Shown: positions 27,901 through 64,000, counted from the stretch's first letter. The stretch is 64,000 nt of DNA from Podarcis muralis (GCF_964188315.1 NC_135660.1:39432001-39496000); one strand, 5' to 3'. Notes: generated by a model not told the origin, from the letters alone. Program-made: numbers and translations.

Positions 27901-29624
27901 AAAGAGAAAGTGTTGATTGTTTTTGCTTCTGGAAATTTTGACATTTTGTGTTCTCTGATGCTTCTGCATGTATAGGAGTGTCTGATTACCAAGACTGCAT
28001 TTCTAAACAGACTAGTAAGCCTCTTGCTCTGCCTGAGGGTTTTTCATCAAATCCGTCCACTGTTGAGGCTTCTCTTCCTACTTTCATACTCGAATGACTT
28101 GATTTATTTACAATATATAGTATTTTCCAACAAGAGCTTCTCCTAGAAGGAGAGCAATTAAATTATTCTCAAGCACAGTCATGCAACACTTTCACCTGCG
28201 TTTTGTAGGCCTCAGTGGGCAGGTGATAGCTGCAGCTTCTGCTTTCAGAACTCTCGGAGGTGCTGGGGGACCAGAACTATAAGAAGTCCTCTCCCCAGCC
28301 CTCTTGTTGCTGTTGCTGCCTCACTCGGCTTAAGATGTGCACAGGGGAATAGCCCCACTGCCTTGAAAGTGTTGCCAAGCACCAGGCCTAGGTAACACAA
28401 GGTGTTAATGTCCTTGATCCTTGGCAGCAATAACGTTCTTTAACAACCATTTGGAAATCTACTCTGCTGCAAAATGTGGTGCCTTGCTTCTTGCAGCAGG
28501 AGATATCTTGTACCAAAGTCACAGTATGCTTGTGGCTATCTGTCGTCTTCCAGGTATAGCATGCTCCTGTTACCCAATAAAGTTTTAAAAAACTGAATAC
28601 TACATGGCTTGAGAAAAGCTCGCAATGATCTGCCCAGAGACTTACAATTGGCTGTCTACATCATCTTGATGGTGTAATCTGTGCACCATGGGAGTGGGGT
28701 TTTTTGGGGGGGAAGTAGTGCCTAGGAAAAGATTGTTGGATGCCCAAAACTTTTCAACAATAATTACAATTTTAGCCAGGAACCTTCTGCTGTAAGCATA
28801 TGAATGACTATCTTTTGATCTCTTAGCTAAAACTGCAGCTGATTGTGGCTCCCATGGAGAATTCCAAATACTCATTTGGAGCCTTTCCTCATATAGAAAC
28901 ATCAAGGGTGTGCATAAATACTGAGTCAAACCATTGGTTCTAGGATTTCAGATGGGAGTCTTAACTAGCCTTACCTGGAAATAACTGGGGATTAAACCTG
29001 GGAGCTTCCTTGCACAAAGCACAGTCTCCACTGCAAAAACTGGAGATGTGGCTGAATGCCTCACTCTATGGACACTGCTCTGTTCCTTGTCTTCAGGGGC
29101 ATGTGATAGCATTGGCACCACTTTCTCCACAGGTGGACTATGGAGCCAAACAGCCATGCTGTGGTTTATCCTATCTCACTCACCTTAGCCCCCGTGATTT
29201 CCCCTTGGGAAATGCTGATTGGGGTGGGACCAGGGCACTGATTGCAGCTGTCTGAAGGCACCCTACATTGTATGTTTCCTCTGGAGCTCCAGCCATCCAA
29301 CAGGTACAGAGGCGGAAATCTGGCATGTCTCTGCTGCTGCCCATTGGCTTCAGACTTTAGAGGAATAGTAGAGGCACTCCCTTTTATCCCTGACTTCATG
29401 CTGCATTTCACAGATGCTGTACGAGATCTGGGGCAAGGCAAGACCACCTCTTGGGGCAGGAGCATGTTCTGGTGATTCGAAGAAAGAGAAAAGTGGGTGG
29501 CAGGAAGAGATGGCTCCACCCAACATAGGCTCAGATCCCAAATGACTTTTGTGAGTTGAATCATGGACCTCCATAGAAATAAGCTTTCCCGCCTCCTATG
29601 TATGATTTTCAATATAGTAAAGAG

Positions 29625-29882
29625 CAGGGGTCAGCAAACTGTTTCAGCAGGGGGCTGGTCCACTGTCCCTCAGACCTTGTGGGGGGCCAGACTATATTTT
29701 GGGGGGGGAGGGAGAAAAAAGAACAAATTCCTATGCCCCACAAATAACCCAGAAATGCATTTTAAATAAAAGCACACTTTCTACTCATGTAAAAACACGC
29801 TGATTCCAGGACCATCCGTGGGCTGGATTTAGAAGGCGATTGGACCAGATCCGGCCCCCGGGCTTTAGTTTGCCTACCCATG
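29625..29882. mobile_element. hAT-type MITE, same family as 689-938 in the opposite orientation
   Basis: 8-bp TSD gtaaagag at 29617-29624 and 29883-29890. Confidence 0.88.
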
Positions 29883-31247
29883 GTAAAGAGAGTAGGGGCA
29901 GAACTAGAATTACTTTGTTCTGGCTCCATCTCCACTTGGTCTCTCAGCTTTTTGCACTACCAGTTCCATGGGCCATGGAGAGGAAAAGGTGGTTAAACGA
30001 GTATGAAGTTTTTAAAGGGGGGGGGGTTTAAATTCCCCCCTCCAAAGTAACCACAGAGTAATTGGAGTTGTGTACCCCTATTTTAGGTGACTATAAATAA
30101 GCCTTCTAAGCAGTTAAGAGATAATAGCTAGGTATCAAAGTTTATAAACCCTGCCACTGACAGCAATGTTTCAAGGTGCTTTGAAGCCAGTGGTATGCTT
30201 GGGAGTTTGCATGAGTTTTCATCTCTGAACTTGTTCTCCCAGATTTAGCATGTAAAAAGTAAACAAACCCACCCACTGCTTGTAATTAACTGCTGCCAGC
30301 CATCCTGAATTACATTGGAGAACAATTAAGAGAAGTGTTTGGTTTCTAAAATAATTCTGGGAAGTCCATTGAAGTTTGGAAGGGTGGGGCAACCCACAGA
30401 TCTTACTAGGAGTATCATAACGAGCAATCCTTAGCCACTTGCAGAAACGATTTGGAGAAGCAACTCTTATTTGTGGACCTACGGATTTCTTCCCTATCAA
30501 TCTGAAATAAAGGATCCCTTGATTTGACTTGGAAAATATTATGGGCTGCCAACCAGTCAACAATGTACTTGTTTGCTTAGTAGAGCCATGTTCCACCAGA
30601 AAACTGATATCAGGCTCTAAATGGACCATATAATCTGGGTTTTCCCAAATTTCTGCAAATCAAGATCCACCCACAATAATGCCAATAATGATCCAGTGGA
30701 TTTCATGCTGGCTGCACCCGTGACATTGACCTGCTAGATTATATTAGGGCTGCATCCCTGATCACCCCAGATTCTCCCTTGCTCTAGGCCCACCCAAGGG
30801 GTTCTTGAATTTGGAATTTGGAAATTGACAAATGTAACTATATCTTGTGACATAACATGAATCTAGGGTTTATTTCTCAGGGTGGGCTGTGTAATGGCTT
30901 GTCGTCACCTCTGAATACATTGTACTGTACTGTGGGTTTTTTAAAAGCTCTAACATAGCCCCAACACCGAGCCTATAGAGCCCAATCCATGTCTTGTTTT
31001 GAAAAGTACCTCCCATAATCCTTCCATTTTCCAGTCCTGTAAGTGTGTGCAGATGGTGTAGGGTGGAGTGAAAATTTCTCAAGCATTTCAGAAAACGAAG
31101 CAAGCCAAATAGACTTAATTGGAGATAGCTTCAGCTTCCCAGATCTATCAGAGGGTCATCACTGGGATTCTATTGGTTCACCAACAGGGTTCTTTGGTGG
31201 CGGTTGTTTTTCGTTACACCCCCACTCCATTCTCCACAGACTGAGCA

Positions 31248-31322
31248 TATAAAAAGCACAGGGAATGACATAAAACAGGTTCATGTGAAATACAGATACC
31301 AGATAACATCTCCTTTTGACAG
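31248..31322 (+). promoter_or_regulatory. Putative AIRE TATA box and short non-coding first exon
   Basis: TATAAAAAG at 31248-31256, donor CAG/gtgagg at 31322/31323, and an acceptor (ctgtctcag) ending at 31736 just before the ATG at 31738. Confidence 0.5.
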
Positions 31323-31737
31323 GTGAGGCCAATAAGACCACCTTCCTCCTTTGTTTAGCAAAGACAGAGCAAGCAAAACAAATCTAATCTGGATGTTCAG
31401 CAGTCATTGAAGAAGTGAAAGACAATGAGTAATAGAAAAGGAGTGATATAAATATGAGTTTCTTTTTACAAGCTATCCTTGTAAATCTGAATTTCCACAG
31501 GCAGGTGGTCTTGAGAGTGAGGTTTCTAAAATAAGACAGAATCTGACTGCTTACCCTACCCTGTACGGTCACTTCTACCCAAGATGCATGTTCCTTCACA
31601 GCATCTGCCATGACCCAAGCAAGTGTACATCAAAATTAAGGTATCTTTTAGTAAGGGTTAGCAGCTGCACCGTGACCAGAAATGGGCATGGAAGATGCAT
31701 GCTTCTAACAATCCTGTAAATGTTACCCTGTCTCAGG

Positions 31738-45511
<13,774 letters not shown>

Positions 45512-46576
45512 AACTCTGGATTTGGCACCGTTTTGCTATTGTGTCAAACATGTTCCTATTGTCTCTTGCTGAAACACTGGCACCCAAAACTACTTGCTTT
45601 CATGTAGTCTATATCACCGCAATGATAGTTCTGTTAAATTGATACTTCTCTGCTCATCTCCAATTGAGAGAATTGATATTTTCAGTCTGTACCTGAGTAG
45701 ATTATTGTAATCACCCTTCAAATAATTGAGTGATGGGGTAGTAATTGAATTGTAGGATAGTCTTTTTTCCACAGATTTTTTTGGTGAGGGTTTCAAAAGC
45801 AAAGTCCCTCTGAACATTCTTCCTGGACAAGTTCCATGCTTCCTTTGTCAATGAGATTACTTTATGCCATTCCTATAGTGTGCTACAGCCTAGATTTAAC
45901 CAGAAGCTTTTCCCTGGACACTTTTGAGGTTCTACAGGAGCCATTGCTATGGTTCTAGTTCTCAGGCAGCATGAAGAGGAAGCTATGTAAAAACCATGTA
46001 ACAAGCAGACAAAGCACAGCAGAATTTCCCAGATGCTCTGAAATGTGGGGAATCCAAGCTGCCTAAGGGGACATTATAGAACCAAAAGTATTCAAGAGGG
46101 CAGGGAGTCAAACTGCCATCAGCACCAGCCAGCATGGCCAATTGTAAGGGATGATGGGGATTGCTGTCCTACAATATCCAGAAACCCACAGGTTACCAGC
46201 CATGTCTGGTATATAAGAGATCTCCTTCAGGCTTAAAAGTTTATAACAACTGATGAGTTTACTAATATGAGTTAATATGTGTTGCTTATGATTATGTGAT
46301 ATTGTAGGTGTTTGTGGACTGCTCTTGAGGGAGTCTGCTTGTCCCTTATAGCTTGTCTCTCTCAGCTACTAATGGCAGAGCACCTTGCAGCAATTCATGT
46401 CATATGCTGAGTTAAAACATTAAAGGTGTCGTGGCTGCTCCTAAATGATAAAATTGTTCTCCTGGAAGGCTTTCCCAAAGTCAACTTGAAACAGTAAGAA
46501 CCATTTGGGCTGCATTTGGAGGGTAAGGCGAAACTAGCAAATATTTTATTGCTTTCTAGTGCATGAATATCATGGA

Positions 46577-46960
46577 AGAAGATTGGAAGAAATTTAAAGA
46601 TTATTTACAGAAATATTGTAAAATTAATGAATGTTAGAATGATGTTGGATAAAAAGTTAAGTGGTTGCTAGCTATAACGCTATAAGGAATATGAAAAAAA
46701 TGGATCATTAACAGGTTAAAATTTAAGGTTATAATATTGTAAGATTGAAGACTAGGATAAACAAAGAGGGAAAGGATTTGCTGAACTAATAATTTGGAAT
46801 GGAATACAAAAAAGGGAGGTGCGAGGAGGTTCGGGAAATAAGCATATGAAAAATAAGTGATGGAAAGATGGAATTGTTTTTTAACTATTTTTACTTTGTA
46901 TTTCTCTTTTTTCTTTTTTCATTCTGTAAAATCTTAATAAATATCTTTTTTTAAAAAATA
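46577..46960 (+). mobile_element. 5'-truncated L1-clade 3' end
   Basis: 11-bp TSD aatatcatgga at 46566-46576 and 46961-46971; EEDWKKFKDYLQKYC ORF2 end; AATAAA and an A-rich tail. Confidence 0.82.
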
Positions 46961-47410
46961 AATATCATGGACATTTTATTTTAATATTGTTGTTTTTAAC
47001 TTTCGTTAGTTACCTGGGGAATCCCCTTTGGGAGACGATGGGTTGCAATTTAAACAAATGAATCATTGCTTCTTAATTAGCAAAATATGTAAAATGCATA
47101 GTTTTTGCCATATTTTACCAGTGAAATAGGAAATCCAACCTCTTTTAGAATTGGTTTACTAATCTGGACCAATAAATCAGTGAATGGTAAAACACTGCAT
47201 GGAACATCTCTTCAGTTTATGGGAATACAGTTTGATAATAGCTAAGATAGAACTAGAGATGAGGAGGAAGGAAGCAAAATCACATCTTATGAAGATTGAA
47301 AGGAGCTCCAAGTAATGAATTGGCAACAAAATGACAAGTGAGACTTAATATTTCACAATTTCCCGTTCCTTTTCTACAGGGGAGGGGTGGGTGGGAACCA
47401 TCCCTTACGG

Positions 47411-50400
47411 CTAGGACCTTTCCACACCCAGTGTTGTCAGGATCTTCAGCACTAATGTTTCCAGTTGCATCTGGTGCTCAATGATGCTGTTCATTTGCTT
47501 CTGCAATGTCAAAACATCCAGGGCTACATCAAGCCGACTGCACCGGTCGAGGGCTTTCTTTAGGTCTGCATGTTGATGCCGCAAGCCAATTAGGTGGCCA
47601 TTGATATCTTGGAGCTTCACCTGCAAGGCTTTGCGATTTCCAATGGTGTTTTGGAATAGTCGTTTCATTTCATGCACAGAACGCAGGATGGCACATCCTA
47701 GGCTGGATGCTGTGGGAAAAAGAAACAAAGACCAGACCATGGGGAGGATTGAGACAATAATGACATGTTTATGTTTTGACGTGAGGACCTAGCAGAGTCA
47801 ATGCCCATCTGACATTCATCCCAGTGGGTGGAGGGAATCCTAGCTGTCTAGCCCTATAGCCACTCCCATTCCACCTCCTGTGCCAGTGAGAAAATCTGCC
47901 ATCCCACCCCAGACAGCTCCCTCTGCCGGCCACCTCCCCCAAATCCCCATGGCCACCAAAAATCAAGGCAGAGAGGATGCAGCAACTGTAGCCCCGTGGT
48001 GTAGGGCCTGGGGCTATCAAACTCACACATGGTGTGGGGCTTCATACTCCGGCGCCAATGGCATCTTCGATATGGTGTCCTCAGCACAGGTGGTGGGTTC
48101 GCCTGTGGTGAATCCGGTGGGTTCGCCTGTAGTGAATCCGGTGGGCTCGCATGTGGTGAATCCGGTGGGCTCGCCTGTGGTGAATCCGGTGGGCTCGCCT
48201 GTGGTGAATCCAGTGGGCTTGTGTGTGGTGAATCCAGAGGGTTGCACCATGCCCTGGTGAGTTCAGATGGTGAGAGACGCGTCAGCTCCACTCGAAGGTG
48301 CTTATGTGGGGTCCTGCCTGGTGACTGAGGTGCCACTGGAATAGTTTCTTCTGATGGCCCGGGCATGACCTCTTCTGATGGCCCTGGCGTGGCCTCTTCT
48401 GATGGCCCTGGCTTGGCCTCTTCTGATGGCCCTGGCGTGGCCTCTTCTGATGGCCCTGGCGTGGCCTCTTCTGGGCCATCATGACAGACCACAGCTAGGG
48501 TGGGAGATGATGAAGCTCAGTAACTGACTGTCTCTATTCTTCACAGTAGCCATGTCATTCCCCAAAGAATCAAAGCTTCAATGAAGTTCGCATATGTGGG
48601 CGTCCAGGGAATACATGTCCTGAATTATGGTAGCATTCTAATGGGAACAGGGAATGACTTTGCCTATATCTGTGAGAGGCACATCAAAGATTCACCCAGC
48701 AAAGGGCATACATCACAATACCACAATACAAAATTGGGCATTCCAGGCAACCTTTGGTGCAACCACTTTATAAAGCCAGCCTTGGACCCAAAGGCATGAA
48801 TTTGATCCTGGGCTTCCCACATATAACCCAACACTCTCACTGCTTTGTAATACATACCTCACAGAAAGTTTTCACTGACCTGATGACTGGAACTGAGCTG
48901 ATTCGCAAAATGATATCGATGGATTCTTTACCTGCCAAATAAAAATAGGCACAGATGATTCAACAGGCATAGTCAAACTGCATGTCATTCAGCAAAACAC
49001 AGCACCTGCAGTCTAGAAAGACAAGTCTTGCATTTTTTATATTAGAATCCTAGAGTTTTAGAGTTGGATGGGTCCCCGAGGATCATCCAATCACAGAATC
49101 TATTAGTAAGAAAAATCTCAGCCAGGTGTGTTTGTCACCACCTGTGCCAACTACCTTTTCTCAGTTTAGCTTTTGCCTATCCCCATTTTGTTTCAACTCT
49201 TTCCTAGTTCACCAAGCTCTTGTTTGGGGCAAATGCAGTAAAAGGCCATCTCATCTGCTGTCAAGAATCTCAGCTTGCCTTACTGTTTTCTGGCCCATAA
49301 ATCATTCTTTGGTTATCAGTCATGGTCCCTGGATCCTGCTCTTCATCTGACCCATTCTCTGGTGGCCTCACCAGACATCCTTTTATAATGATATTTATTA
49401 AATTTTCCATTTTAACAATCCAATAAAACCACATCAAAAACATTCCAAATCATACAATAATCAAACAGTCCGAATATTATACCAAATTATAAATCTTTGG
49501 TTGGCTTCCCATGTTCTGAGGTCGGGGAGTACAGATCATCTCACATTTGTGCTGCTTTTCATAGTTCTTCCAGGTAGTTCCCATAAGGCAACCCGATGTT
49601 AATCCTTCATTTGTTTTTAACAGCCTTGAGTTCATCTGGCAAGCAAGTTAAATCAATACAGTATATTTCTGTGTGGGTGTTTATATTCCTTTTCTCTCTC
49701 TTTATATTCTTTGTACTCTGAATCTGATCGTGGCATTTCACTTTCACTTCCTCACGCCTGTGATTATCCACTGCGACACATCCCAAAATGGAGGAAATTT
49801 GGCTGCCAGTTGTACCAGGCATATGTCCAAACTTCTCCATTTTATCTCATTCCAAAGCAATTAAGTCTGTACTTTAGCTAGAAACCTTGATTTCCACAAT
49901 TGAAAATTCATTAATCTTTTCCAAACTGTTAATAATTAGACCAAAATTATTTCAATGAATACAATACTCTCCAGTCCCGCTTGCGTAGATAAACAATCCA
50001 GTAGTCAGTCCTTCCAGGGAGATTTGCCAAGTAAAATAGCAAATACGAAGTATATCAAAAAGAAACAAAGAAGGCTCACCCCTTCCGTTCCGACATACCA
50101 GTCCCGTACTGATGATAATCCTTCTTCCACTCAAATCTTTTGGCACCTCAGTGGCTGAATCAATTAGCAGAGTAGTTTATCTCCCCTCACTCAAAGCATG
50201 CCCATTAATTAAGTCCGAATTTTCATCTTAAAAAACAGAATTTTGTTGCTCATGGCGGTGACTTTGGAAAGTTGCCAAAGAGACGCATGGTGTTTTCCAC
50301 CTAGCGCTCCCTCCCCCTCATTCCTCCCGGACTGGGAGCAGGTGTTGGGTGATCTGCGGGTGAAGCTCCTCCCCCCCCAGGCCTGGGGCGATTGGGAGGA

Positions 50401-50963
50401 TGATTACTCCCATCTCATCCTCAAAATATTCCATGCAAAATGGCTCCGATGTAATGGGTAGTCGCCATCATGGCAAGCCAAACGGGAAGCCCTCACCAGA
50501 CATCCTTTTAACTGTGCCTTCAGGAGTGCTTGTGCTCATGATGTTATTAGGGCAGCTCTACACAACCCTGGACGCGGGTGGCGCTGTGGGTAAAACCTCA
50601 GTGCCTAGGACTTGCTGATCGTATGGTCGGTGGTTCGAATCCCCGTGGCGGGGTGAGCTCCCGTCTTTCGGTCCCAGCTCCTGCTCCCAGCTCGAAAGCA
50701 CCCCCAAGTGCAAGTAGATAAATAGGTACCGCTTTATAGCAGGAAGGTAAACGGCGTTTCCGTGTGCTGCGCTGGTGCTCGCTTGCCAGAGCAGCTTCGT
50801 CACGCTGGCCATGTGACCTGGAAGTTTCTTCGGACAGCGCTGGCTCCTGGCCTCTTAAACGAGATGAGCGCGTAACCCTAGAGTTGGACACGACTGGCCC
50901 GTACGGGCAGGGGTACCTTTACCTTTTACCTTTACACAACCCTACTTCCGATACTGTTTGTAC
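47411..50963 (-). CDS. Probable C-terminal exons of the SP-like gene: 50963-50930 (uncertain), 48494-48027 (octapeptide repeats), 47709-47411 (coiled-coil-like, stop)
   Basis: The 468-nt exon (phase 1-1, ccaccctag acceptor, gtgagt donor) joins in frame to the 299-nt terminal exon (tttttcccacag acceptor). The link to the SAND exons needs a phase 0-to-1 exon; the 34-nt exon at 50963-50930 fits. Confidence 0.55.
48088..48240 (-). repeat. Coding 24-bp minisatellite, about 6 copies (PPDSPQAS/N)
   Basis: Repeated ggtgaatccggtgggctcgcctgt units on plus. Confidence 0.9.
48340..48480 (-). repeat. Coding 24-bp minisatellite, about 5 copies (PGPSEEAT)
   Basis: Repeated gccctggcgtggcctcttctgatg units on plus. 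Confidence 0.9.
49385..50490 (-). mobile_element. Degenerate L1-clade insertion
   Basis: 19-bp TSD cctcaccagacatcctttt at 49366-49384 and 50491-50509, the right copy followed by AA (TTTT/AA endonuclease site). The internal sequence is decayed. Confidence 0.72.
50570..50932 (+). mobile_element. Sauria-type SINE
   Basis: Full-length copy with the 11-bp TSD tacacaaccct at 50559-50569 and 50933-50943. Confidence 0.92.
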
Positions 50964-51390
50964 CTGCAAAAGTTTCAGTGTTGACATACTTGCTTTGCTT
51001 CCAATTGGTGACGACTACTATTGCCTGGCCATCATGCCTGCCCCACAGTTAGGCCACAGTTATTGCAGCACGTCTCTTAATTATATGTAGAAGTCCCTAG
51101 ATCTTCCAGAGACAACACTTCTTCCCCAGTTCCATTCACAACAGGCCTACTAGCATTGACAGGGAGGTGGTGGTGGGCTCAACCATTTCATCTTTCTAGG
51201 GCTCACAGGCAGCACCCACAGTCTGAGGGTTTTTTTTCATGCTGATAGTGCAGTTCCTTTTTTATATATATTTTAAAATGTCAGCTGCTTTGAGCACAGG
51301 TGTATTTGTGGAAAATATAATATACGAATAAATTGACAATATCTATGGCTGTCACACACCAATATGGTAAAACTGTTGATAAACTGTTAC

Positions 51391-54300
51391 CTTTTTCCTC
51401 CTGCCGTATATTCGTTTTGGATTAGGAAGATATCCACTCTGAAATAAGCATGACATAATTAGTTACTCTGATGCATTAGCGGGATCCCAAAATAGTATTT
51501 GAAATGAGGGAATCCACACAAAGAAATGGGAACTATTTTTGAAACATCTATTTTTTGACATCAGTATATAAGAAGTTGGCTCTATTTCTTAGCACAGATA
51601 CCGCTCACATCACTCCCATATATATTTATATGTGTTATTGTCATAGGTGCCTGAAAATGTTAATACATCTTTGCTCCAGGAAATACACCTCTTGACTTTA
51701 ACTGGCACACACCTGAGCAACATACAGTGGTACCTCGGGTTAAGAACTTAATTTGTTCTGGAGATCCATTCTTAAACTGTTCTTAACCTGAGGTACCACT
51801 TTAGCTAATGGGGCCTCCTGCCGCTGCCACACGATTTCTGTTCTCATCCTGAAGCAAAGTTCTTAACCCAGGGTACTATTTCTGGGTTAGCGGAGTCTGT
51901 AACCTGAAGCGTCTGTAACCTGAGGTACCACTGTATAAGAATAAAAAGTAGCAGAAAATGCAAGCAAAAGGAATTCCTTTGTTTCCAATTCTTTTAGTCT
52001 AACCAACACCTCCCATTGTTGTAGCAGGTGCAAGGAAGGTACAACAATACTATATGATTACATAAGGACAGGATATTGTATTTGTGATTATAAGAAGGAA
52101 AGGTGTGACTATCTGAAGACTTGAAAGTATCATCTGATACTTCTTTCAGATCACATGTAGAAAATAAGGCATTAAAATTACAGGCATTACAAGTGAACTG
52201 CATACCACTATTAATTTTTCTAAAGGAAGCCCTTTATGGCGGATACTTCTTTTCCAGGATTTCCAGCTTTCACGTTCTCCTTCAGCCTCAAATTCTGGTG
52301 GCGTGAACCACTTTCCATCAGAACTCTTGATGGACTTCTGTGAAATTCCTATGACAAACAGAGAAGTCACATGAATGTTACACACCTATCCCAATCAGCA
52401 AAGTTCACTGAAGGATGTAAGAAATCTGTCAACAATTTATCCAATATATACTTTAGAAAACGGCGTTTCCGTGCACTGCTCTGGTTTGCCAGAAGCAGCT
52501 TAGTCATGCTGGCCACATGACCTAGAAGCTGTACGCCAGCTCCCTCGGCCAATAAAGCAAGATGAGCGCCGCAACCCCAGAGTCATCCGTGACTGGACCT
52601 AATGGTCAGGGGTCCCTTTACCTTTTTACTTTAGAAAAAAACCATATGAACAAAGATTCTGATATAAGCACTACAATAAATTTCTGCATGGGGCTTGGTG
52701 CTTCTGACTAAAACTATTCAGTGTTTGATTTTGTTGTAAATAGGCATGCAATAAGAATCACTGATCAGGGAACACAAGTCTGTCTTGATACTTCAGCAGC
52801 TCCTCTGCTGAACTATTCCATTATTTGCTTACATGCTGGTTATATAAAATTGTTTGATTGCTTATTTTTAAGATGAATCATGCATAACCTCATTTTATCT
52901 GGCTTTGATTAAATCTAAGATACCTTGAGTAATTTTTTAGTCTACATTATTTTAGTCTACATTATTTTAGTCTACATTATTTGGCTATGTTGCTGAGCAG
53001 TGTCTGAGGAAAGGTGCCTTCTATTTGTTGTATTACTCAGCTACGAGTGATTGCCAAAGAAGAAGCAGCAGCAGCAGCTACCACAACTGTCTCATGGCTA
53101 GCAATTGTAAAATTGCAGGTTGAAGAGGCAATCCATCTGAAAACTCTACAATCACATTTCTGCACACTTTTGGTTCTGACAATAGAGAAGTACTGGTATT
53201 TCTTTTCACTTCACAGTATACGGGAAGCGAAAACTATAAAAAATTTAGTCAAATTCATAAATTACATGCTGAAATACTTAAAGCTGACGAAATCACTTGT
53301 GCTTTTAAGAGGGATTCAAATGACTGAAAATCTCATTATGATACTGAAGTAATTGCTGTAAGCTACCCTGGCTCCATAAGCAGAATGGGATATGTATAAT
53401 ATAAAATAAACTGTTTTCTGGGGAAAATTTGGGGGCTTCTATATACACTTACCTAGGAACCTTCCAACTGGACTACAATAATGCACTCTATGTGAGACTT
53501 CCCTTGGGATTGGCAAGAAGCTGAAGCTGGTGAAGAATACTGTGGCCAGATTTTGAGTGAACACCGATGTCATGTAAAGATATAGCTTTTTGCCCAAGCT
53601 TTCCCTGACCCATAAGACCAGACCCTGCTTTGTGTGTTTGAATACACTGAATTTATGCTCTTAAATGAACAAATAAATGAAAAGGCACTTATTTCTGTTT
53701 TGAGAAGATATGTAGAAGAAATAGTTCTTCCCCAAATGCAAATGGTAGTCATATACTAACTACATGATGGCACCCTTCCCATCCCAATTTTTAAATCTGC
53801 CGTTAATATTATATGCCTTGTACAGATTTAATACACACAGATATACTCTTCAAAACCAATAGTTTACCTGCTGCCAATTTCTCCTTATATAAAACACCTT
53901 TAACTTGTCCACAGTGCACAAGAAGGGTGGAGCCCTGCAAATCCTCCTCTTGAATTTGAATCTGCCTTCGTTTTACTAGATGAGATCAAGAAATCCAAGT
54001 CAAATAGTTAAAATTCCTATATTTTGGGCTTCTAGAAAATAAATCTGATACCAAACTCCAGACCACCAACATGCAGCACAGAATATTTCATATCATCTGA
54101 AAGTAATTCAGATCACTTCTAGTAAGAGTAAATTTTAATCTGAGAGATAAGTGAAAAGATTGTGAATTATATTCATCTAGTCAACAGAATTTATATACTG
54201 CTTGGTTGTAATAAAACCTCTAAGCAGTTTACAATCTGCCAGTCCACTCCAGTGAAGTTCTAGAACAGAGTGATGGAATGAAGTACCGTATTTTTTGCAC

Positions 54301-57300
54301 CATAACACTCACTTTTTTCCTCCTAAAAAGTAAGGGGAAATGTCTGTGAGTGTTATGGAGGGAATGCCTATGGGTGGCATGCCTACAGATTTTCCTCCTC
54401 TAAAAACTACATGCGTGTTATGGTCGGGTGCGTGTTATAAAGCGAAAAATACGGTACTTAACTATTAACAATAAGGCATGAGTGGCAGGCTAAATGAAGA
54501 AAACAGTGAGGAAAAGGATGGGCTTCGCCAGCATAAAACTGCAAGCTTATTTAGTATCAGAAATTTTACAACATTATGAAAAGTTTGTGACATTCTACAG
54601 CATTGAACTCTTTACCTTTTCGAATTCTTCTACCATTCCATCTTTCAGTATATTGCATTCGATGCTTTCTCTTTCTTTTTCTTTTTCTCTTTCTCTTTAC
54701 TGCATTTGTTGTTCCTTAAGAAAATGTTTCCAATTAATTACACACACTTATTTCTAGTTCCTTCTTCACGCTGCATTAAAGACAGTGCCCAGTGCTAGAC
54801 GAACTCCATGAAGCCTTTGAACTGTTCTGGAAACCCTACCACATTTTAAATCATAATTTGGTGAAACATTATCCAAATTTCCCAAACCAGAAAACAGCAC
54901 TTAAGAGCTTTGGAACAAGCCAGGATATTAAGCGATAGCTTAATACTCTACTTGTTTTAAAGCTTTTCACTATAGTTTCCTGGTTCAGATGAAATGGAAA
55001 TATAATTAATGAAAGACTTTCTGGTTTGTTTGCTGGCTCTTTGCATGACCAACCTCTCTTCCCTGAACTACATGCCTTAAACTCCCCTACATATCCTTGT
55101 TGTTACTCACGGCCATTTCCTAAGGAGTAATCCGGATCACTTTCATCTGTGGAAGTTGATAATTCACTGCTGTTCGCTTCTGAAGTAGAGTTATTTCCAG
55201 CATTCTGGGTAACTAAAAATGTATTATTATTAATAATTAAAATTGCATACTGCCCTTCATCCAAAGATCACAGGGCAGTTTACAATATAAAAATATAAAA
55301 TGAGAACACAAAATACATAACAAAAGAACAGACATACGCCAATAACCATCCTCGCATAAACACATTTTAAAAGCCATAGATTACATAATCAGCTGAAGGC
55401 CTGGCTATAGAAAAATATTTTAGCATGGCATCTAATGTATGTTGAATATCTGTAAAGCTATGTCTGCATATTCATCATAATTTTGAAGCCTTTATTGCTT
55501 TCTCTCATCACCTGTGCAGCAGCTTTCTTAACATAAAAGCAGCCCTGTATTCCCAAAAACCGCAGTTTTTTGGGGGTGGGAAGGGGGGAGCTACTGATGG
55601 CGAACCTTTTAAAGACCAAGTGCTCACTTCTGGATTTCCGCAACATGGTGAGCGGACTGCGAATCTGACGGCTCCGTTAGATTCGGCTTCATGGAGCCTG
55701 GGGGAAGAGCACTAGGGCGAAGCACCTCCCCAAAAAACCCCAAGAGGAGCATTGGGGGGTCTCGGGGTCCTGCGGCTCACAGACGGCATTGCCGGTCCCT
55801 GCTCCTGTTTCGAAAGGAGCAGAGAGTGCCGGGGAAGCCGAGCACACCGGTGAGCTAGGCACCATTGCGGCTGTGTAGAAGCAAGCCTCTGATCCAGCCA
55901 CAAGCGGAAGTCTTTCCAACAATTGTGCCGATTGAAAGGTGAGGAATCTGACTAATGTGACTGACTAATTTGGCGAATCTGGCAAGAAAATGGGAGTGAT
56001 AAAAGAAAGTCCACTCCCATTCTGGGTGCTGTGAGCACCAAATACATACAAGCGAAGTGTGGATGAAATTTACTTTGGGAGATAAGTTAACTAATAAGTG
56101 ATTAGAATAAAAGAAATACGCATAGCTTTTGTTCATACCACTCTCAAGGCTTTTTAAACAAGATATTGACCTGAACTTAATCTGAACTTGACTGGATCCT
56201 ATGGAACTTGATGTAGAATGCAGGATAAATCTGAGAAGGATTACAATGTTTCTTGAAGGAAGAAAACTGCATTTTTATTTTTATTTTTGAAGATTAGCAC
56301 TTGGGAAATCATATAACTTTGAGAGAGAAACTTATGTTCTATAAAAGTGCTGAAGACGTCTAACCTAATGGAATTATAACTGTCATTTAATTTATTAAAA
56401 GGCACTTGCTGGCTAAAATCAAGATCAAAAGAAGAGGACTACAACATCCATTATTAATACTGGACTAAATTAGAATCAGGTCGGCGGTTCGAATCCCCGC
56501 AACGGGATGAGCTCCCATTGTTCGGTCCCTGCTCCTGCCAACCTAGCAGTTCGAAAGCACGTCAAAGTGCAAGTAGACAAATAGGTACCGCTCCGGCGGG
56601 AAAGTAAACGGCGTTTCCGTGCGCTGTTCTGGTTCGCCAGAAGCGGCTTAGTCATGCTGGCCACATGACCCGGAGGCTGTACGCTGGCTCCCTCGGCCAA
56701 TAAAGCGAGATGAGCACCGCAACCCCAGAGTTGGCCACGACTGGACCTAATGGTCAGGGGTCCCTTTACCTTTACCTAAATTAGAATCAATATTTAATTG
56801 TATAGACTTATTATATTGAATATATAGAAATGATTTGGATGTGAATGGATGTCAAGATTTGAATATATAACTGTTATAAATTATATTTGTGAGTAAGTTG
56901 GGAGAGGGGAGGGATAAAGTTGGAAGCACTGGTTTCCTCTTCTGAACCTAGTGAAATGTCCTTGGCAAAGTATTGACAAAGCTAAAAATAACACTATTAG
57001 TGGTGGGAAAGGACTTTTTGTTTTAAAAGTAAACCCTGGAGGAAGCTGGGAAACAGGGAGAGTTAGCCCCCCTTTACTCCAAACTAGAAATGGCAGAGGA
57101 AAAAATCCATATGTTAAAACAAACAAACCAGGCCGTAATGCAAAAGAACGTAAGAGATGAATTGTATGATTTTCTTTTAGACATGAAAAGAGAACTGTTT
57201 GATCAGATAAAAGATGTTAATAAGGCAGCTTCTCAAATCTGTAAAAGTAATAACATACTTGCAGAGGCTGTGGGACAAATAAAAGAGTCAAACACACAAA

Positions 57301-59705
57301 CCACCAACGTGAAAATGGTAGAGAGACAAAGAAAAGTAAGAGTAATTCAAGACAAAAATGGTATTACAGTTATAACTCATGTTGCGTCTGCTTCAGGTTA
57401 TGTCTTTTCAAGTTGCGTCCTGCGGGAACCTGGAAGTACAATTACTTCCCGGTTTCACCGCTCACCCATGTGCAGAAGCGCTACGCATTCTGGATGCGAA
57501 TGCTTTGAGTTGCGGATGTGCCTCCAGGACAGATTACATCTGCAACTCGAGATTTGGGAGACTTTGACTGTGATAGAGAAGAAGCAGGAAGGGAAGGTAA
57601 AATGCATAAGAGCTACTATATGTGGTGGCAATGTAAAATTATTAAAAAGGCCTGGGAAAAGACATAATAAAAACTTGAAGAGTATGTGGGAAATGATTAA
57701 TGTTAAAAAAAAAACCTGAAATCACCAGCAGGGGAAAATAAATGCAATTCAAATTGGGGAAAATAAATACAGTGAATTTCTTCTCCTGCATGGGTCCTTC
57801 CAATTCCTGGATCCAGCAATCTAATGGAGGATTCTTTTGTTGAAGTAGCCAGGCAGGGGCCACACTAGCCCCAAAGTACTGCATGGGTTGTTAGTACATT
57901 GGTACCTCTGGTTGTGAACGGGATGAAAGGAACACAACCTGCAGCGACGTGTCTGTGCATGCCCGGGTTGCGATTCACCGCTTCTGCACATGACGTCATT
58001 TTGCAAATGGGTGGTAAGAAGGACAAAAGTCAGCATGGTATGTGAGAGCAGGAATTAGAAGCAGGCTGCAGGCAAAAGCCTGAGAGGGAGAGCCATGCTT
58101 CGTTTCTGCTTGAATCCAAGGCTGTGGCAATGGGAGAAGCAAGACCATCTGGGCATGACTGTAGCCAAGACCATCTGGGCATGACTGTAGACAGCCGCCC
58201 CCCTTAAATCAAGTAAATAAATAAATGAACTGACAGTGTCGCAGATAGCTTGGTTCTGCACCCCTCCCAAAACATAAATCCTGGCTACACCCATATGAGC
58301 TGTTACTACTTTGAGTCCCAAGCCCCAGGAGGTTGTAAATATGACAAATGCTTAAAAGGAGTATGCTTCGTATTTTACTGCTCTTAAGATTGCCACAGCT
58401 TGAAGCGCCAAGGAGAGGGTAGTGGTGCCCAACCTGTGGAATGCCCTCCTACCAGATGTCAAAGAATTAAACAACTACAGTATCTGACTTTTAGAAGACA
58501 TCTGAAGGCAGCCCTGTTTAGGGAAGCTTTTAATATTTGATGAATTGTTGTATTTTAATATTTTGCTGGAAGCTGCCCAGAATGGCTGGGGCAACCCAGC
58601 CACATGGGTGTGGTATAAATAATAATAATATTAATAATGGTTATTATTATTCTTACACATCTTTTCCAAACTTTGGAAGGCAGGAAAAACTTCATAGAAT
58701 CATAGAGTTGGAAGAGACCACAAGGGCCATCGAGTCCAACCCCCTGCCAAGCAGGAAACACCAGCAGAGCACTCCTGACATATGGTTGTCAAGCCTCTGC
58801 TTAAAGACCTCCAAAGAAGGAGACTCCACCACACTCCTTGGCAGCAAATTTCACTGTCAAACAGCTCTTACTGTCAGGAAGTTCACCACTTGTACAGTGG
58901 TACCTCGGGTTAAGAACTTAATTCGTTCTGGAGGTCCGTTCTTAACCCGAGGTACCACTTTAGCTAATGGGGCCTCCCGCTGCCACCGCACAATTTCTGT
59001 TCTCACCCTGAAGCAAAGTTCTTAACCCGAGGTACTATTTCTGGGTTAGTGGAGTCTGTAACCTGAAGCATCTGTAACCCGAGGTACCACTGTACTGTAC
59101 ATATGTACATATGGGGGGGGGGGTTACTGTGTGACACGGATGCAAATCTGATCGTTATTTTCAAAAGAAGCCAACGTCCCCATGTTTTGGAGGAAGCACA
59201 TTAGCAGAGTGTGACCAGCCCTTTGTACTCTTGCTCGCTCACCACTTGTAAGGAGAATCTTCACTTTCTGGGTCTGATAATATTAAGCAAATAACTGTGA
59301 CGTGGCTGTTAATGAAGCACATCCTCTGGAGGCTGGCATTTTGAGAAGGGCTGCTTTACTTCCTTCGCTCCTGCCCACACAGTTCCCCGCTTAAACTCGA
59401 ATTTCCCGCTCAATCCCTCCCGGCTCCCAGGCTTCCCCAGCGGGCGCTCCCGCCTCGCTTAGGACGCGGGTGGTGGGCGCACAAGGGCCAGGGAGCCCCT
59501 TATAAGGGTCTTCCAATCCGGGTTACAAAACGACGGCCCGAGAAAGCCTATGGGACGGGGCGGCGACTCCGCCAACACCGTCTGAGACTGAAGCAGCAAC
59601 TCCTTCCCCTGTATGGGAATGAACCGGGCACTTACTTCCCTCTTTCGCCTTGGCATTGGTCAGAGCAGAGGCGCGAGGCGCCGAGGCACCAGCGCCACCT
59701 TCCAT
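51391..59705 (-). CDS. SP100/SP110/SP140-family SAND-domain nuclear protein, N-terminal and SAND exons: 59705-59636, 55212-55111, 54714-54616, 53975-53868, 52348-52206, 51438-51391
   Basis: GT-AG exons join in frame: MEGGAGASAP..., an acidic Ser-rich exon, a KRKRKRKRKRK NLS exon, SAND (LLVHCGQVKGVLYKEKL-AAGISQKSIKSSDGKWFTPPEFEAEGERESWKSWKRSIRHKGLPLEKLI), then SGYLPNPKRIYGRRKK, the typical post-SAND segment of SP proteins. The exon 1 link across a 4.4-kb intron is inferred. Confidence 0.85.
51725..51933. mobile_element. Tc1/pogo MITE
   Basis: cagtggtacctcgggtt TIRs with TA flanks. Confidence 0.9.
52458..52630 (+). mobile_element. 5'-truncated Sauria-type SINE
   Basis: Matches the 3' half of the other copies, ending in gggtccctttacctt. 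Confidence 0.8.
54286..54454. mobile_element. Tc1/pogo-type MITE, third family
   Basis: TIRs ccgtattttt...aaaaatacgg with TA flanks. Confidence 0.8.
55625..57800 (+). mobile_element. Internally deleted L1-clade element: CpG-rich 5'UTR, ORF1 start, truncated MITE, ORF2 end fragment
   Basis: GC-rich leader at about 55625-55900; coiled-coil ORF1-like start at 57090; MITE at about 57367-57551 missing its right TIR; then YMWWQCKIIKKAWE (ORF2 Cys-rich end) in another frame. Boundaries are approximate. Confidence 0.55.
56479..56775 (+). mobile_element. 5'-truncated Sauria-type SINE inside the L1 leader
   Basis: 14-bp TSD ctaaattagaatca at 56465-56478 and 56776-56789. Confidence 0.88.
58690..58890 (-). 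mobile_element. CR1 3' end
   Basis: catagaatcatagagttggaagagaccacaagggccatcgagtccaacccc, the antisense CR1 tail. Confidence 0.8.
58895..59092. mobile_element. Tc1/pogo MITE
   Basis: cagtggtacctcgggtt TIRs with TA flanks. Confidence 0.9.
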
Positions 59706-59765
59706 GAAAACAGCCGAGCGCCGCCAGACTACCCGAACTGTCTTTCTCGGCCGAGGTATTCAGCA

Positions 59766-59792
59766 GAAACGAAAGTGAAGACATCACTTCCG
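59766..59792. promoter_or_regulatory. ISRE/IRF-like element with an adjacent ETS motif in the CpG-island promoter of the SP-like gene
   Basis: GAAACGAAAGTGAA at 59766-59779 and CACTTCCG at 59785-59792, 60-90 bp upstream of the ATG at 59705, in CpG-rich sequence (about 59400-60330). Confidence 0.6.
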
Positions 59793-61548
59793 CAATGAAC
59801 TTGAACGAGGATTGCTATTTGTTTCTTGCGGACTCGTTTAGCGCGGGGAGGCGGAGAACTGGTCGCTCTGCCCTTAACGCCTTTCTCAGGAGATGAAATG
59901 CCCATTCCCTCGCTCTCCCACACCTGTCGCAATAGGTTTTGCCCATAAAGCGTGTCTCCCTCGACGAAACGTTATGCACTCTTTTGTCACACACGCACAC
60001 GTGTCGTTCTAGCGGAGCTCTGCTCTGTCTCCACCCCTCGTGGTCCGCCAGGGCTTTCCAGGACACGTGAACTGAGCATACACTCCAGTGCGTGCGCATC
60101 GTCTGTACAGAGGAGGACTCGCACGAATTCCTTCGCCAAAGTGCCTTTCTCCTTGCAATACATCAAAGCGGTGCTGCAGCCTTGAGAATCATGACGCGGA
60201 TAATTCCTATCTCTTCTATAAACTGTTTTAGTTAGTCTCGCTACTGACTTGTCGATGGATGTTAGCACGCTCAGTGAAGCAGCTTGATCCACGATCGGAG
60301 TATAGAGAGGCTTGGCAGGGCGCAAGACTTTGGCGGAGAAAATGGATTGATTGATTGATTGATTGAGGATTCAGTCTCTTTCTCGTGTTCAACTTTCACA
60401 TGGGGCTGGCAAGTTAATGGACTTGTTGCTTTTCAGTGGAAGTCCTTTTGGGGTTGGGGCAAAGATGCTGAGCTTTTTTTAGTTTTGCCCAGATATTTTT
60501 TTCAGCAAAAATGCAAAAAATGCTGTTTATTTTTATGGAAGATAGGCCAAAACGGCACTGCCAACACGGGCTGCCATACATCCGTATTTTCCCAGACATT
60601 TACCAGATTTCCACCAGGACACTGCTAGAGACAGCTGTATTCCATATATGTCCTGGAAATGCCAGATGGATTGCAACCCTACAATAGTCCAATGACAGCA
60701 TATTCTTCAGGCAGTAAGAAAGCCAACAAGCCCTCTCCCTTTCCCATATTTTCACTTAAACTGCTCTCACACATATATTCAAGATGTCGAGTTGGTAGGA
60801 AGACTGGAAGGTGTCCCAATGCAGATGCTTCTTTTTTGCCTCTAATCCTGTGCCTAAAAAGAATAATTTAGCAGGTGATGTTCTTCCTGCCACTTATCTT
60901 TACCACTGAAAAAACATATGTCAAATTTTTGGCTGCTAAAGAAATAGAAGGGCCAAGAAAAGAAGAGTCAACTAGAGTTGTGCAAAGCCAGCTATTTTAT
61001 TTCCATGAAGTCTTCTATATTTCACATCTTTACATGCACAAATGTGCCTTATTGCAGGTTGCTCACTTAATTCACATTTTCAACAAAAATTACATTTTCT
61101 AGTCCTAATGCAAAAGCTAGTGATTAAACTTAGCAAAATCCCCTTTCTCTTGAGCATTGTTCATTTCCTTGTTACAGAGAGGGGGCTTCTCCCACTCCCT
61201 GCAGCAGTGTAGAAAGCTTGATACATCAAACAGTACAGTGCATATGAAGAAATTAGCCATCTTTTATCTGCTTCAAAGTACAGCTGCACTAAAGAAAAGC
61301 GGAGCCATTGATTTGAGACAATTAATGCAGATGTGTATTAGGAATAAAACGGAAGCTGGCCCAACAATTCATTTTTTAAAAAGTGACCTGGGCTACTTTG
61401 GTACCACATCCTTTTCCATTTTCCTTTTCAACAAATATTTTATCTGTTTTCAGAACTGTGGTAAAAAAATAATGAGGACAAGGACAAATACTTAACGTGT
61501 GGACTGTAATTTCCTTTCTGGGCCCGCCTCCCTCCTTGTTCATTCCCC

Positions 61549-61890
61549 TTGAAAGAGTGCAATCCAAACTCCTCAGAGCCCTTCTACGTTCCTAGATGCG
61601 TTTCAAATGCATGGGTCAGACTAGAAGCAGGGATGATGAAAGTCGAAGATCTTATTAGTCTAACCTCAATATATAAGTGGCTAACTCTGAAACTGCTCCC
61701 CCAAGGAATAGCCCCATTGATTCTGAGTGACCAGTTTCAGTCTGGCTGGCAGACAGCAGTCTTAAACACTCTTCAGAAACTGGGACTTGCTCCCCAAACC
61801 CTCATAACTATGGGCCTGGGGCAAGCTAGATCCATGGTTAGGCAAAGAATCATGGACATAGAGACAACAGGACTGTACAAGGGTCCCTGA
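61549..61890 (+). mobile_element. Probable non-LTR retrotransposon fragment downstream of the RT domain
   Basis: KLGL...MGLGQARSMVRQRIMDIE resembles LINE C-terminal segments I recall from reptile genomes. Not verified. Confidence 0.35.
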
Positions 61891-64000
61891 TTATAAAATC
61901 ATAGAAAATGGGAGATACATAGCCACTCCAGCAACATATCTCTATTTCCTCACATCCAGAAACGCAAGAAGGGCTTTCACTCTTGCTAGAAGCTCGACCT
62001 TGCCCTCACCGGTTCTGGAAGGCTCCTATAGAAGAGTCCTGTATGCACAGAGACTTTGCACCTGTCCATTAGGGGAAATAGGAAGCCCTGAACATATATT
62101 TTTTAGATGTCCTTTTTATGTTGAGATTTTAGAGACACCACTGATCCTTTGCTGAAGAGGCTCACCGATCTTTCAGACAAGTCTAAACTTAATTCTCTCC
62201 TCTTAGGCAAAGATCACAAGGCTACCTGGTTGGTAGCCAGATTCTGTACCCAGATTTGTAGGCACAAATCAACCTCTAGAATAAAATAGCTTACTAGGGA
62301 CATGCTGAAGTCGCCCTTTGGGGTGCCCCAGGGTCAATTTTTATGGTAGCCCAAATCTCAGTTGTACAGGTGTATGTATATATCTCAATTTTAACTCATG
62401 AGCTATTGCTGCAATCTGCTCTGATTGTATATTTTATCTTTATGAACGATGTTTTTATTGTGTTATGTGAGCTGGTCTTTGACCATAATAAATTATCTAT
62501 AACATGTGTGGACTGTAATTTCCCAAACACCTACAAACAATACATGGTTGAAAACAGTGAGTCAGACATTTAAGCCGAGTGTATTTCACAAGTGGAGTAG
62601 ACAATAAACTACCCCACATATAAATGGAAACCTTACTCTGTCAAATTGGTCATGTTTTGTGACATATCTGATTATTCATTTATGCTGTGTTATGTGTTTC
62701 TGAAAGTGCTATTGCTTGTCAAGCAAACCACTTACCATGAGTGCCCCTGAATCTTTTTCGTATGAGCTCCCACAGGGGCGTGAAGGCCAAATCTTTATGT
62801 AGCACTGAAAGGTGTGGGTCAGTTTGGTTTACAATGAAGCCAAGACCAGACATCACATCCTCTGATATGAAAGCCTTGTCCTTAATCACTGGTGGGTTGG
62901 TCAGAAGCCTGAGTGTTTTGACTTAGGGCTCATCCACACTTCCGATTACCATATACCCTGATGTTTACCACTGAATCGGAGCATCAGTCCAGTGGATGGA
63001 TGTTTGCTCTGATTCAGTGGTAGAGAGTGGGTTTCCCCAAGGAAAGTGGAAGGGCTCAGTCCCGTGCCTAGAAAGCAGAAAACTCTCAGGCCCATGATTT
63101 CTAGATGTGGGGCAAATGAAGAATGGACGAGCCCTTAGTGTTGAGCAACTGGCTTGAAGTGATACCACCTGAAGACCGTTTTGCTAGTCTCAACCAACTC
63201 CAGGTACTTATTTCAGAAGCTGCCTGGCCAGAGAGGTGAGCAGCTGGCTTGGAGTTAAGATGCTTGACCTGTTACCCCTGGATAAATCATCTAGTGAGTA
63301 CCTTGAGCCATGATGGCCACAGGAGCTTATGAGTAGCAAATAGGCTTTTGTAACACCTGCTCCTGGTTCCTTGTTCCTGCTGTGGTGGAGATGAGCAGAG
63401 AGCAGGATTGACAGATGGAACAGCTCTAGACTAAGCAGCTTCCTCCCGTGGACACGAACATCTGGCTTCAAGGTGGCTTCTGAGGGGAATTTTGTGATGC
63501 TGTTCTCCAACCAAAGAAAATTTACAAAAATGGATATATACTAGGGGCAACTGCATTAAAATGGATATAGTATTGCAAATAACATACAAAAAATACATTA
63601 TGGCTTGCAAAAATATGCACTTCGGTCAAAACTGCATACAAAGATGTGTTTACTTTGCACTAAAATGCTGTAGAATTCTCATGAGGATTAAAAAAAAATA
63701 AAATTCTCAAATTGCTACAGAAATGGAATGGAAAAATGACAAAAAGAGAACCGAAAATGACAAATCCCACCACTCCTAATGGGAACATTTTGGCCAAAAG
63801 GGAGAACATTTCACTGAGTTCTTGTGTTACATAGATTGCATTTGAGACTGTGTTGACATGAATTTAAATTAGACTTGTTTTATATTTTGATCTAGGCTAT
63901 GTTTTGTTACTGGACGGATACTTCGTGTTGAGTTGCTCTTACTATTTTGTTTAGTAAATTTGGGCTGCCTTCAAGCAGCTATTTACAAATAGAAAACGCT

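Follow-up and report, generated by a model that had tools for sequence, protein, structure and literature searches.

The PHD-bromodomain cassette of the SP family is present in SP140, SP110 and SP100C and absent in SP100A/B and mouse Ipr1, and SP100B has a SAND domain without that cassette. The archetypal architecture of an SP protein is a nuclear localization signal (NLS), a CARD, a SAND domain and a PHD-bromodomain (PHD-BRD) cassette, the last of which reads chromatin (PMC11879014), and mouse Ipr1 (Sp110) is a product of this family in which SAND occurs without PHD and bromodomain (PMC5021326). CARD multimerization drives the formation of AIRE foci and AIRE activity, and polymerization through the CARD is regarded as a requirement for nuclear foci and function in SP100-family proteins as well (PMC7118133). 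The KDWK region mediates binding of SAND proteins as homo- or heterodimers (PMC5021326), and DEAF1 binds paired CpG motifs (PMC4274154). Here, we analyzed a 64,000-nucleotide stretch of the Podarcis muralis genome (GCF_964188315.1 NC_135660.1:39432001-39496000), referred to below as the window, in which positions 47411 to 59705 of the minus strand are occupied by the gene LOC114597665. We consider it probable that LOC114597665 is a transcribed SP-family gene of nine exons that lacks a CARD and combines a SAND domain with a helical tail, and that its product is a DNA binder that stands alone or competes with other binders.

In its SP100/SP140-type SAND domain and in the basic NLS-like stretch that precedes it, the lizard gene is like SP100, SP110, SP140 and SP140L. 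It differs from SP100 and SP140 in having no HSR/CARD, PHD or bromodomain, with Ser-Pro repeats and a helix of about 94 residues instead. Ipr1/Sp110 and SP100B keep the Sp100/HSR-CARD head, which multimerizes and forms nuclear dots, whereas the lizard gene is without this head and adds the helical tail. Squamate SP140-like genes share with it the FQSS linker exons that follow SAND, and it lies directly downstream of one of them. GMEB1 and GMEB2 have a similar layout, with a SAND domain, a helical oligomerization region and CpG-containing half-sites, and the GMEB coiled coil serves homo- or hetero-oligomerization; this is analogy and not membership, since their SAND domain is distant (1.3e-5), their helices have no sequence similarity to the lizard tail and their genomic origin is another one. 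AIRE also has a SAND domain and is physically linked to the SP cluster in squamates, but it carries a CARD and two PHD fingers, neither of which the lizard gene has, and other SAND domains are closer to that of the lizard gene than the AIRE one is. The positional orthologue in the iguanian Sceloporus undulatus has the same SAND domain, FQSS linker and acidic Ser-rich middle and a homologous helix; it differs by two HSR/CARD exons, by a middle of three short exons without 24-bp arrays and by a helix that is 13 residues shorter.

Exon structure and family placement

The open reading frame is unbroken over 1389 nt (462 codons plus stop) in nine coding exons on the minus strand, from the ATG at 59705 to the stop codon at 47413-47411, and the counted exon lengths give a product of 462 residues. 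In a scripted check of the boundaries, all acceptors ended in AG and all donors began with GT; introns 1 to 4 are in phase 1, introns 5 and 6 in phase 0, and introns 7 and 8 in phase 1. The coding part of exon 1 (e1, 59705-59636) specifies the Ala/Gly-rich start MEGGAGAS...KEG (MEGGAGASAPRASALTNAKAKEG plus one base) and ends at the donor A/GTAAGT, and both the ATG and e1 are kept in P. raffonei, P. lilfordi, Zootoca and Lacerta. Exon e2 (55212-55111), with phase 1 on either side, encodes an acidic Ser-rich segment and is 92 to 98% identical in the P. raffonei (L002) and L. agilis (L003) loci. Exon e3 (54714-54616) encodes a Lys/Arg run, a putative NLS, followed by HRMQYTERWNGRRIRK, and contains the Met at which RefSeq isoform X2 starts. 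The run itself (54665-54697) has 11 alternating residues, is the only one of its kind in the window and is encoded by a purine microsatellite; its length varies, with 11 residues here versus 4 to 7 in other lacertids. The first half of SAND (Pfam PF01342) is encoded by e4 (53975-53868) and the second half, with the KSWK motif, by e5 (52348-52206), which ends in phase 0. Two small exons were located by tblastn with RefSeq orthologues and by their splice sites: e6 (51438-51391; SGYLPNPKRIYGRRKK), a basic linker that is 100% identical in P. raffonei, and e7 (48931-48880; VKNPSISFCESAQFQSS), whose FQSS linker motif is common to squamate SP140-like proteins. Disordered Pro/Ser/Glu repeats occupy e8 (48494-48027; phase 1-1), and e9 (47709-47411) encodes the long amphipathic C-terminal helix of about 94 residues, a putative coiled coil, and the stop codon. 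The probable 3' untranslated region spans 46550-47410 on the same strand, with putative ends and poly(A) signals ATTAAA at 46985 and AATAAA at 46550.

An earlier note on this DNA, made from the sequence alone, had described an Ala/Gly N terminus, an acidic Ser-rich segment, an NLS-like run and a complete SAND domain with a KSWK motif, and all of these were found on the minus strand. Its exon set was correct for e1 to e5, e8 and e9 and overlooked e6 and e7, which are needed for the frame, given the phase 0 end of e5 and the phase 1 start of e8. RefSeq isoform X2 of LOC114597665 corresponds to the window from the Met in e3 to the end of e9 with zero differences. A search with e5 matched a 418-residue protein of P. 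raffonei (LOC128414428; 98%) and a 206-residue 'SP140-like protein' of L. agilis (85%). Thus, the gene model is already public in RefSeq for five lacertids but is uncharacterized, and its architecture is unusual compared with the described SP family. The earlier note had proposed looking for the same domain order in other squamates: orthologues with the same SAND-only architecture are present in four further lacertids (P. raffonei, P. lilfordi, Zootoca vivipara and Lacerta agilis), and Sceloporus departs from it by its HSR/CARD. The names that RefSeq gives to these genes are 'uncharacterized', 'SP140', 'SP140-like', 'rho GTPase-activating protein 17-like' and 'DEAF1 homolog', and the misleading ones among these automatic names should not be propagated. 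A full-text literature search found no paper on the gene, nor any on SP genes beside AIRE in reptiles.

LOC114597665 is a member of the SP100/SP140 family of immune chromatin regulators, with a SAND domain of the SP100 type. Exon e5 matched the Pfam SAND profile with an E value of 1.4e-16 over profile positions 26-71 of 76, and the reading frame of e4 matched it with an E value of 2.9e-5 over positions 3-28; the domain is therefore complete and split over the two exons, and no exon matched any further Pfam family. The best PDB sequence matches included SP100B (5.6e-19) and SP140 (3.7e-17), with GMEB1 at 1.3e-5, and the KSWK motif aligned to KNWK of SP100B. When the predicted SAND fold was compared with the human SP140 SAND-DNA structure 8J70 using Foldseek, the template modeling (TM) score was 0.95 and the root mean square deviation was 0.7 Å. 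Sequence identity of the SAND domain was 47 to 50% to human SP100B/SP140 and 32% to GMEB1, and a GMEB-type SAND as the nearest relative was ruled out on these values. DEAF1, the name given to one Zootoca isoform, was also ruled out, as there is no MYND zinc finger and SAND is the sole Pfam family, and so was AIRE, since the plus-strand neighbor alone has a CARD and the two PHD fingers. In a SAND tree of 74 columns, which has weak resolution, the lacertid genes formed one clade (support of 93) within the squamate SP140-like group, with rat SP100 and a primate SP140L as neighbors, and the DEAF1-like proteins with PF01753 were the outgroup, far from the lacertid clade. Among the features that mark the SP family, the gene has the SP100-type SAND with its KDWK-like motif and a place in the tandem SP cluster; it has neither the N-terminal HSR/CARD (PF03172) nor the PHD and bromodomain cassette.

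It could be argued that e8 and e9 (47411-48494) lie in another transcript and that the SAND gene ends after e7, as in the L. agilis model, but we regard this as extremely improbable. The RefSeq model of L. agilis does stop shortly after the FQSS exon, and the joints from e7 to e8 and e9 lie outside the interval covered by RNA reads (54600-60599). However, in the L. agilis locus (L003) e4 to e8 occur twice (20018-32704 and 33164-39050) with identical percent identities to the window, as either a recent duplication or an assembly artifact, and this probably explains why the model is truncated after e7; e9 is present in that species 1.8 kb before AIRE. In the models for P. muralis, P. raffonei, P. 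lilfordi and Zootoca, e7 is spliced to e8-e9 or straight to e9, the phases fit (e7 ends in 1, e8 is 1-1 and e9 begins in 1), the Sceloporus model joins SAND to a homologous tail, and there is no space for another gene between e7 and AIRE. The RefSeq models of the four lacertid species, the Sceloporus tail and the phases all bear out the earlier placement of 47411-48494 in the same gene as the SAND domain.

Absent domains and the start of transcription

An HSR profile was built from 59 SP-family N termini and run over six-frame translations of the window and the retrieved loci. It gave no match on the minus strand from 47.4 to 64 kb and none in P. raffonei between a point 10 kb upstream and the end of the gene (L002 1-22804), and its sole matches in the window were two plus-strand AIRE exons (31720-31917 and 32684-32896). 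The profile was sensitive enough for this purpose, since it found both Sceloporus HSR exons at 1e-13. Additionally, the records of the lacertid orthologues list PF01342 alone among precomputed Pfam domains. A tblastn search with five PHD/bromodomain SP proteins returned PHD matches only at 40161-40265 and 42083-42169 on the plus strand, which are PHD1 and PHD2 of AIRE (the former matching human AIRE PHD1 at 1.4e-21), and no bromodomain match in the 64-kb window. There is also no room for a PHD or bromodomain after e9, because the stop codon of AIRE at about 45480 (plus strand) is 1.9 kb from 47411. The profile and tblastn searches, negative in the window outside AIRE, agree with the earlier description of a SAND protein without CARD/HSR, PHD or bromodomain, and the statement that no HSR exon lies between 55212 and 59705 held for the minus strand in the six-frame search. 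CARD exons upstream and beyond the window, which the earlier note had named as the finding that would overturn it, were not seen by the HSR profile within 10 kb upstream in P. raffonei. Without a CARD, the protein should not enter the CARD filaments or nuclear bodies of SP proteins and AIRE, and without a PHD and a bromodomain, it should not read histone tails.

RNA evidence came from reads and contigs mapped to window positions 54600-60599 (two bulk runs plus contigs; RNA runs X1, X5 and X21). The joint between e1 and e2 (59636/55212) was crossed by six stranded reads from RNA run X21, in which every first mate was on the plus strand, as expected for minus-strand RNA, and it was also present in one spliced contig of 422 nt from RNA run X1. 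It is the sole joint listed into e2; the e2-e3 joint is hidden by microsatellite masking in the read mapping. Unspliced contigs end at 59929 (RNA run X1) and 59946 (RNA run X5), and RNA depth falls to zero past about 60000-60200 and is zero at 60200-60599. Together, these contig ends and the zero depth place the start at about 59950-60000, in a CpG-rich region, and no read-through from the upstream gene was visible in the RNA at 60200-60599. Expression was low in the two bulk runs. Two nonsynonymous e1 variants, Ala7Pro (59687) and Asn17Ser (59656), appeared in the reads and contigs, and both are residues found in other Podarcis sequences. The share of sequence words found in the RNA runs was rejected as proof of e8-e9 expression, because the contigs of RNA runs X1 and X5 cover intron 1 at exon-like depth.

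Short interspersed element (SINE)-like repeats are present at 56400-56800 and 58400-59200 (intron 1), 52367-52552 and 50598-50891, and their translations hold a tRNA-derived GFEPPT string. These repeats draw RNA-seq depth that is hundreds-fold higher along with many false joints, and bins that contain them are uninformative on the gene.

The same data bear on whether LOC114597665 is in fact an ordinary CARD-bearing SP gene, with HSR/CARD exons located further upstream or borrowed by read-through and with e1 as one of several starts. The Sceloporus positional orthologue has an HSR/CARD, a same-strand SP140-like gene with an HSR ends only about 4.3 kb upstream, a RefSeq isoform has another 5' end and starts from the e3 Met, and 25 nt of the RNA run X1 contig are unplaced. 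Nevertheless, we judge it very unlikely: besides the negative HSR profile on this strand and within 10 kb upstream of the P. raffonei gene, all RefSeq models in the five lacertids are without an HSR, the RNA has zero depth at 60200-60599, e1 supplies the sole joint listed into e2, and the contig of RNA run X5 runs unspliced from e1 to 59946.

The 5' leader and start region (59706-59950, minus strand) lies in a CpG-rich promoter with a CpG observed/expected ratio of 0.82. A motif scan found no canonical interferon-stimulated response element (ISRE) within about 1 kb of the start and one conserved core of the interferon regulatory factor (IRF) type at about 59775. Judging from these promoter motifs, the interferon induction proposed in the earlier note is not supported. 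A palindrome near the start resembling a gamma-activated site (GAS) was discarded, being merely start-codon context.

Repeat exon, helical tail and coding constraint

Exon e8 contains two coding 24-bp tandem arrays detected by Tandem Repeats Finder (TRF), at 48347-48473 (PGPSEEAT type) and 48092-48235 (DSPQASPP type), and 16 Ser/Thr-Pro sites. Copy number differed from species to species and also in two assemblies of P. muralis, one array having 4 to 12 units and the other 2 to 5. RefSeq isoform X3 skips e8, which is possible because this exon is in phase 1-1. We ran AlphaFold on the RefSeq P. muralis isoform X2 (e3 to e9) with 15 aligned sequences and on the tail alone with 5 sequences. In isoform X2 the SAND domain was predicted confidently, with a predicted local distance difference test (pLDDT) score of about 90, residues 109-283 (e6 to e8) were predicted to be disordered, with e8 at a pLDDT of <50, and residues 289-380 formed a single helix. 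The tail alone was modeled as one 94-residue helix with a mean pLDDT of 89.6. In agreement with this, the earlier note had pointed to a helical C-terminal segment, and the tail shows two heptad blocks, in which the hydrophobic fraction at positions a and d is 0.62 to 0.88 versus 0.10 to 0.30 elsewhere, with a register shift between them. Leu, Ile, Val, Met and Phe make up 36% of the tail, and proline is absent. The predicted helix and its heptads fit a coiled coil with a discontinuity, and such a helix could plausibly oligomerize.

To find relatives of the tail, a word search with the P. raffonei tail was made and returned lacertids alone; the same search with the Sceloporus tail returned only itself, and a full-length alignment search limited to 8000 candidates gave no further tail-bearer. 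A tail profile compared with 166 fetched proteins matched lacertids and Sceloporus alone, and the tail had no match in Pfam, among PDB sequences (E values up to 10) or in the ESM Atlas; these blank searches do not establish that the tail is absent in other squamates.

Coding constraint was assessed in two pairwise comparisons, with P. raffonei and with L. agilis, and the ratio of nonsynonymous to synonymous substitution rates (dN/dS) was calculated by the method of Nei and Gojobori. Indels in exons were in-frame only, and introns had 4.7 to 8.5 indels per kb, 72 to 79% of which were not multiples of 3. In a simulation, the chance that no stop codon arises after 65 to 80 random substitutions was 2 to 4%, and all 16 splice sites are intact in P. 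muralis. The N-terminal exons had 7 to 9 nonsynonymous changes versus 1 synonymous change. Thus, the reading frame is maintained and the residues are changing fast, a pattern that is also close to relaxed constraint. Fast-changing residues with a kept frame are usual for immune genes, and the fast evolution of this protein is consistent with an immune role without demonstrating it.

These values raise the question of whether the gene is a decaying remnant, which lost its CARD, came under relaxed constraint and is transcribed without function on its way to becoming a pseudogene. A dN/dS of 0.6 to 0.9, the excess of nonsynonymous changes in the N-terminal exons, an exon divergence no lower than that of introns, the upstream ATGs of the leader and the low expression in the two bulk runs would all suit such a fate. 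We consider it quite unlikely, though, in view of the intact frame and the retention of every splice site in P. muralis, the occurrence of these exons both in genomic DNA (P. raffonei and L. agilis) and in gene models (P. lilfordi and Zootoca), and the restriction of exon indels to in-frame ones when adjacent neutral DNA has 5 to 8 per kb, most of which break the frame. A stop codon would have been escaped with a chance of only about 2 to 4%, the core residues of SAND and the heptads of the helix are retained, and the tail has been kept since the split from iguanians.

Some observations nevertheless weigh against a functional, CARD-less SAND-helix protein as we describe it. The dN/dS ratio was 0.86 without e8 and 0.63 to 0.72 overall, and exon divergence (5.3%/7.2%) was not below intron divergence (4.2%/7.2%); constraint on residues is therefore weak. 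The leader contains three out-of-frame upstream ATGs, at 59946, 59905 and 59784, of which that at 59905 has a favorable initiation context, pointing to translational control or to initiation at the downstream Met of e3. The real N terminus is uncertain as a consequence of these ATGs and of the RefSeq isoform that begins at the e3 Met, and the 25 nt that could not be placed on the window are at one end of the spliced contig of RNA run X1. The joints from e5 through e6, e7 and e8 to e9 rest on RefSeq models, intron phases and conservation, the reads having covered 54600-60599. The SAND tree leaves the Sceloporus protein unresolved as a sister of the lacertid clade. Lastly, nuclear entry, DNA binding and oligomerization through the helix are all steps that we infer.

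Origin of the locus and proposed action

In both P. raffonei and L. agilis, a canonical SP140-like gene with a SAND domain and a bromodomain is the same-strand upstream neighbor. Its PHD and bromodomain exons were located in both loci (L002 and L003), and its HSR was seen in P. raffonei; the L. agilis locus ends before that point. The last 20 or so coding bases of this gene are at 63979-64000 (minus strand) in the window, and in P. raffonei it occupies L002 1-6351. About 4.3 kb of spacer separate it from e1, and within the window approximately 874 bp at 61306-62180 are missing from the aligned P. raffonei sequence, which is probably due to an insertion. Downstream, AIRE lies tail to tail with LOC114597665, at 31720-45480 on the plus strand of the window; in the loci L001 and L002, AIRE is at 39832-48005 and 24596-32804, respectively. 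Human AIRE and the human SP genes are on different chromosomes; unlike this arrangement, the SP cluster adjoins AIRE in Lacertidae and in Sceloporus.

The Sceloporus undulatus protein (XP_042315346.1; 401 residues, 'SP140-like') is encoded tail to tail beside a gene with HSR and PHD. It comprises two HSR/CARD exons, SAND, the FQSS linker and a middle part that is acidic, and its last exon is a homologue of e9, with an E value of 2e-4 in the locus search and the motif QKQMNxIIxxQ in both. The lacertid exons e1 and e2 have no counterpart in the Sceloporus locus. Since this positional orthologue has the HSR/CARD, SAND and the same tail, the tail appears to be old and the loss of the CARD specific to lacertids. 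We infer from these comparisons that the tail replaced the PHD-bromodomain end before the lacertid-iguanian split and that loss of the HSR/CARD exons followed, no later than in the ancestor shared by Podarcis, Lacerta and Zootoca. In such a course of events, an SP140-like duplicate beside AIRE would have exchanged its PHD-bromodomain end for the helical tail before that split, and the lacertid lineage would then have shed the two HSR/CARD exons and acquired a new short first exon in a CpG-rich promoter.

For the protein itself, we propose that the basic stretches, as a putative NLS, would carry it into the nucleus and that the KSWK surface of SAND would bind DNA; half-sites containing CpG are what other SAND proteins bind. 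Pairing of the C-terminal helices may supply avidity in place of CARD filaments, as in SAND proteins of the GMEB type, and the protein would either work on DNA by itself or vie with its CARD-bearing neighbors for their sites. Any modulation of SP proteins or AIRE would then act via competition for DNA sites and not via CARD filaments. The restriction-factor and dominant-modulator roles that the earlier note had offered are speculation. A bolder idea, which we consider unlikely, is that lacertids may have converted an SP-family gene into a fast-evolving, CARD-less SAND dimer, joined by a new coiled coil, that occupies the CpG targets of the SP140-like gene, and perhaps those of AIRE, or viral DNA, with neither filament formation nor histone reading. 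If this were true, the gene would be a built-in dominant negative or a stand-alone antiviral DNA binder, and the CARD-bearing Sceloporus orthologue would be its natural control.

Overall, comparison of the lacertid gene with its Sceloporus orthologue offers a natural experiment on the contribution of the CARD to an SP protein, and LOC114597665 shows that the SP family can swap its effector end. The order of an SP140-like gene, the SAND-helix gene and AIRE in two squamate families also bears on a common origin of AIRE and the SP genes.

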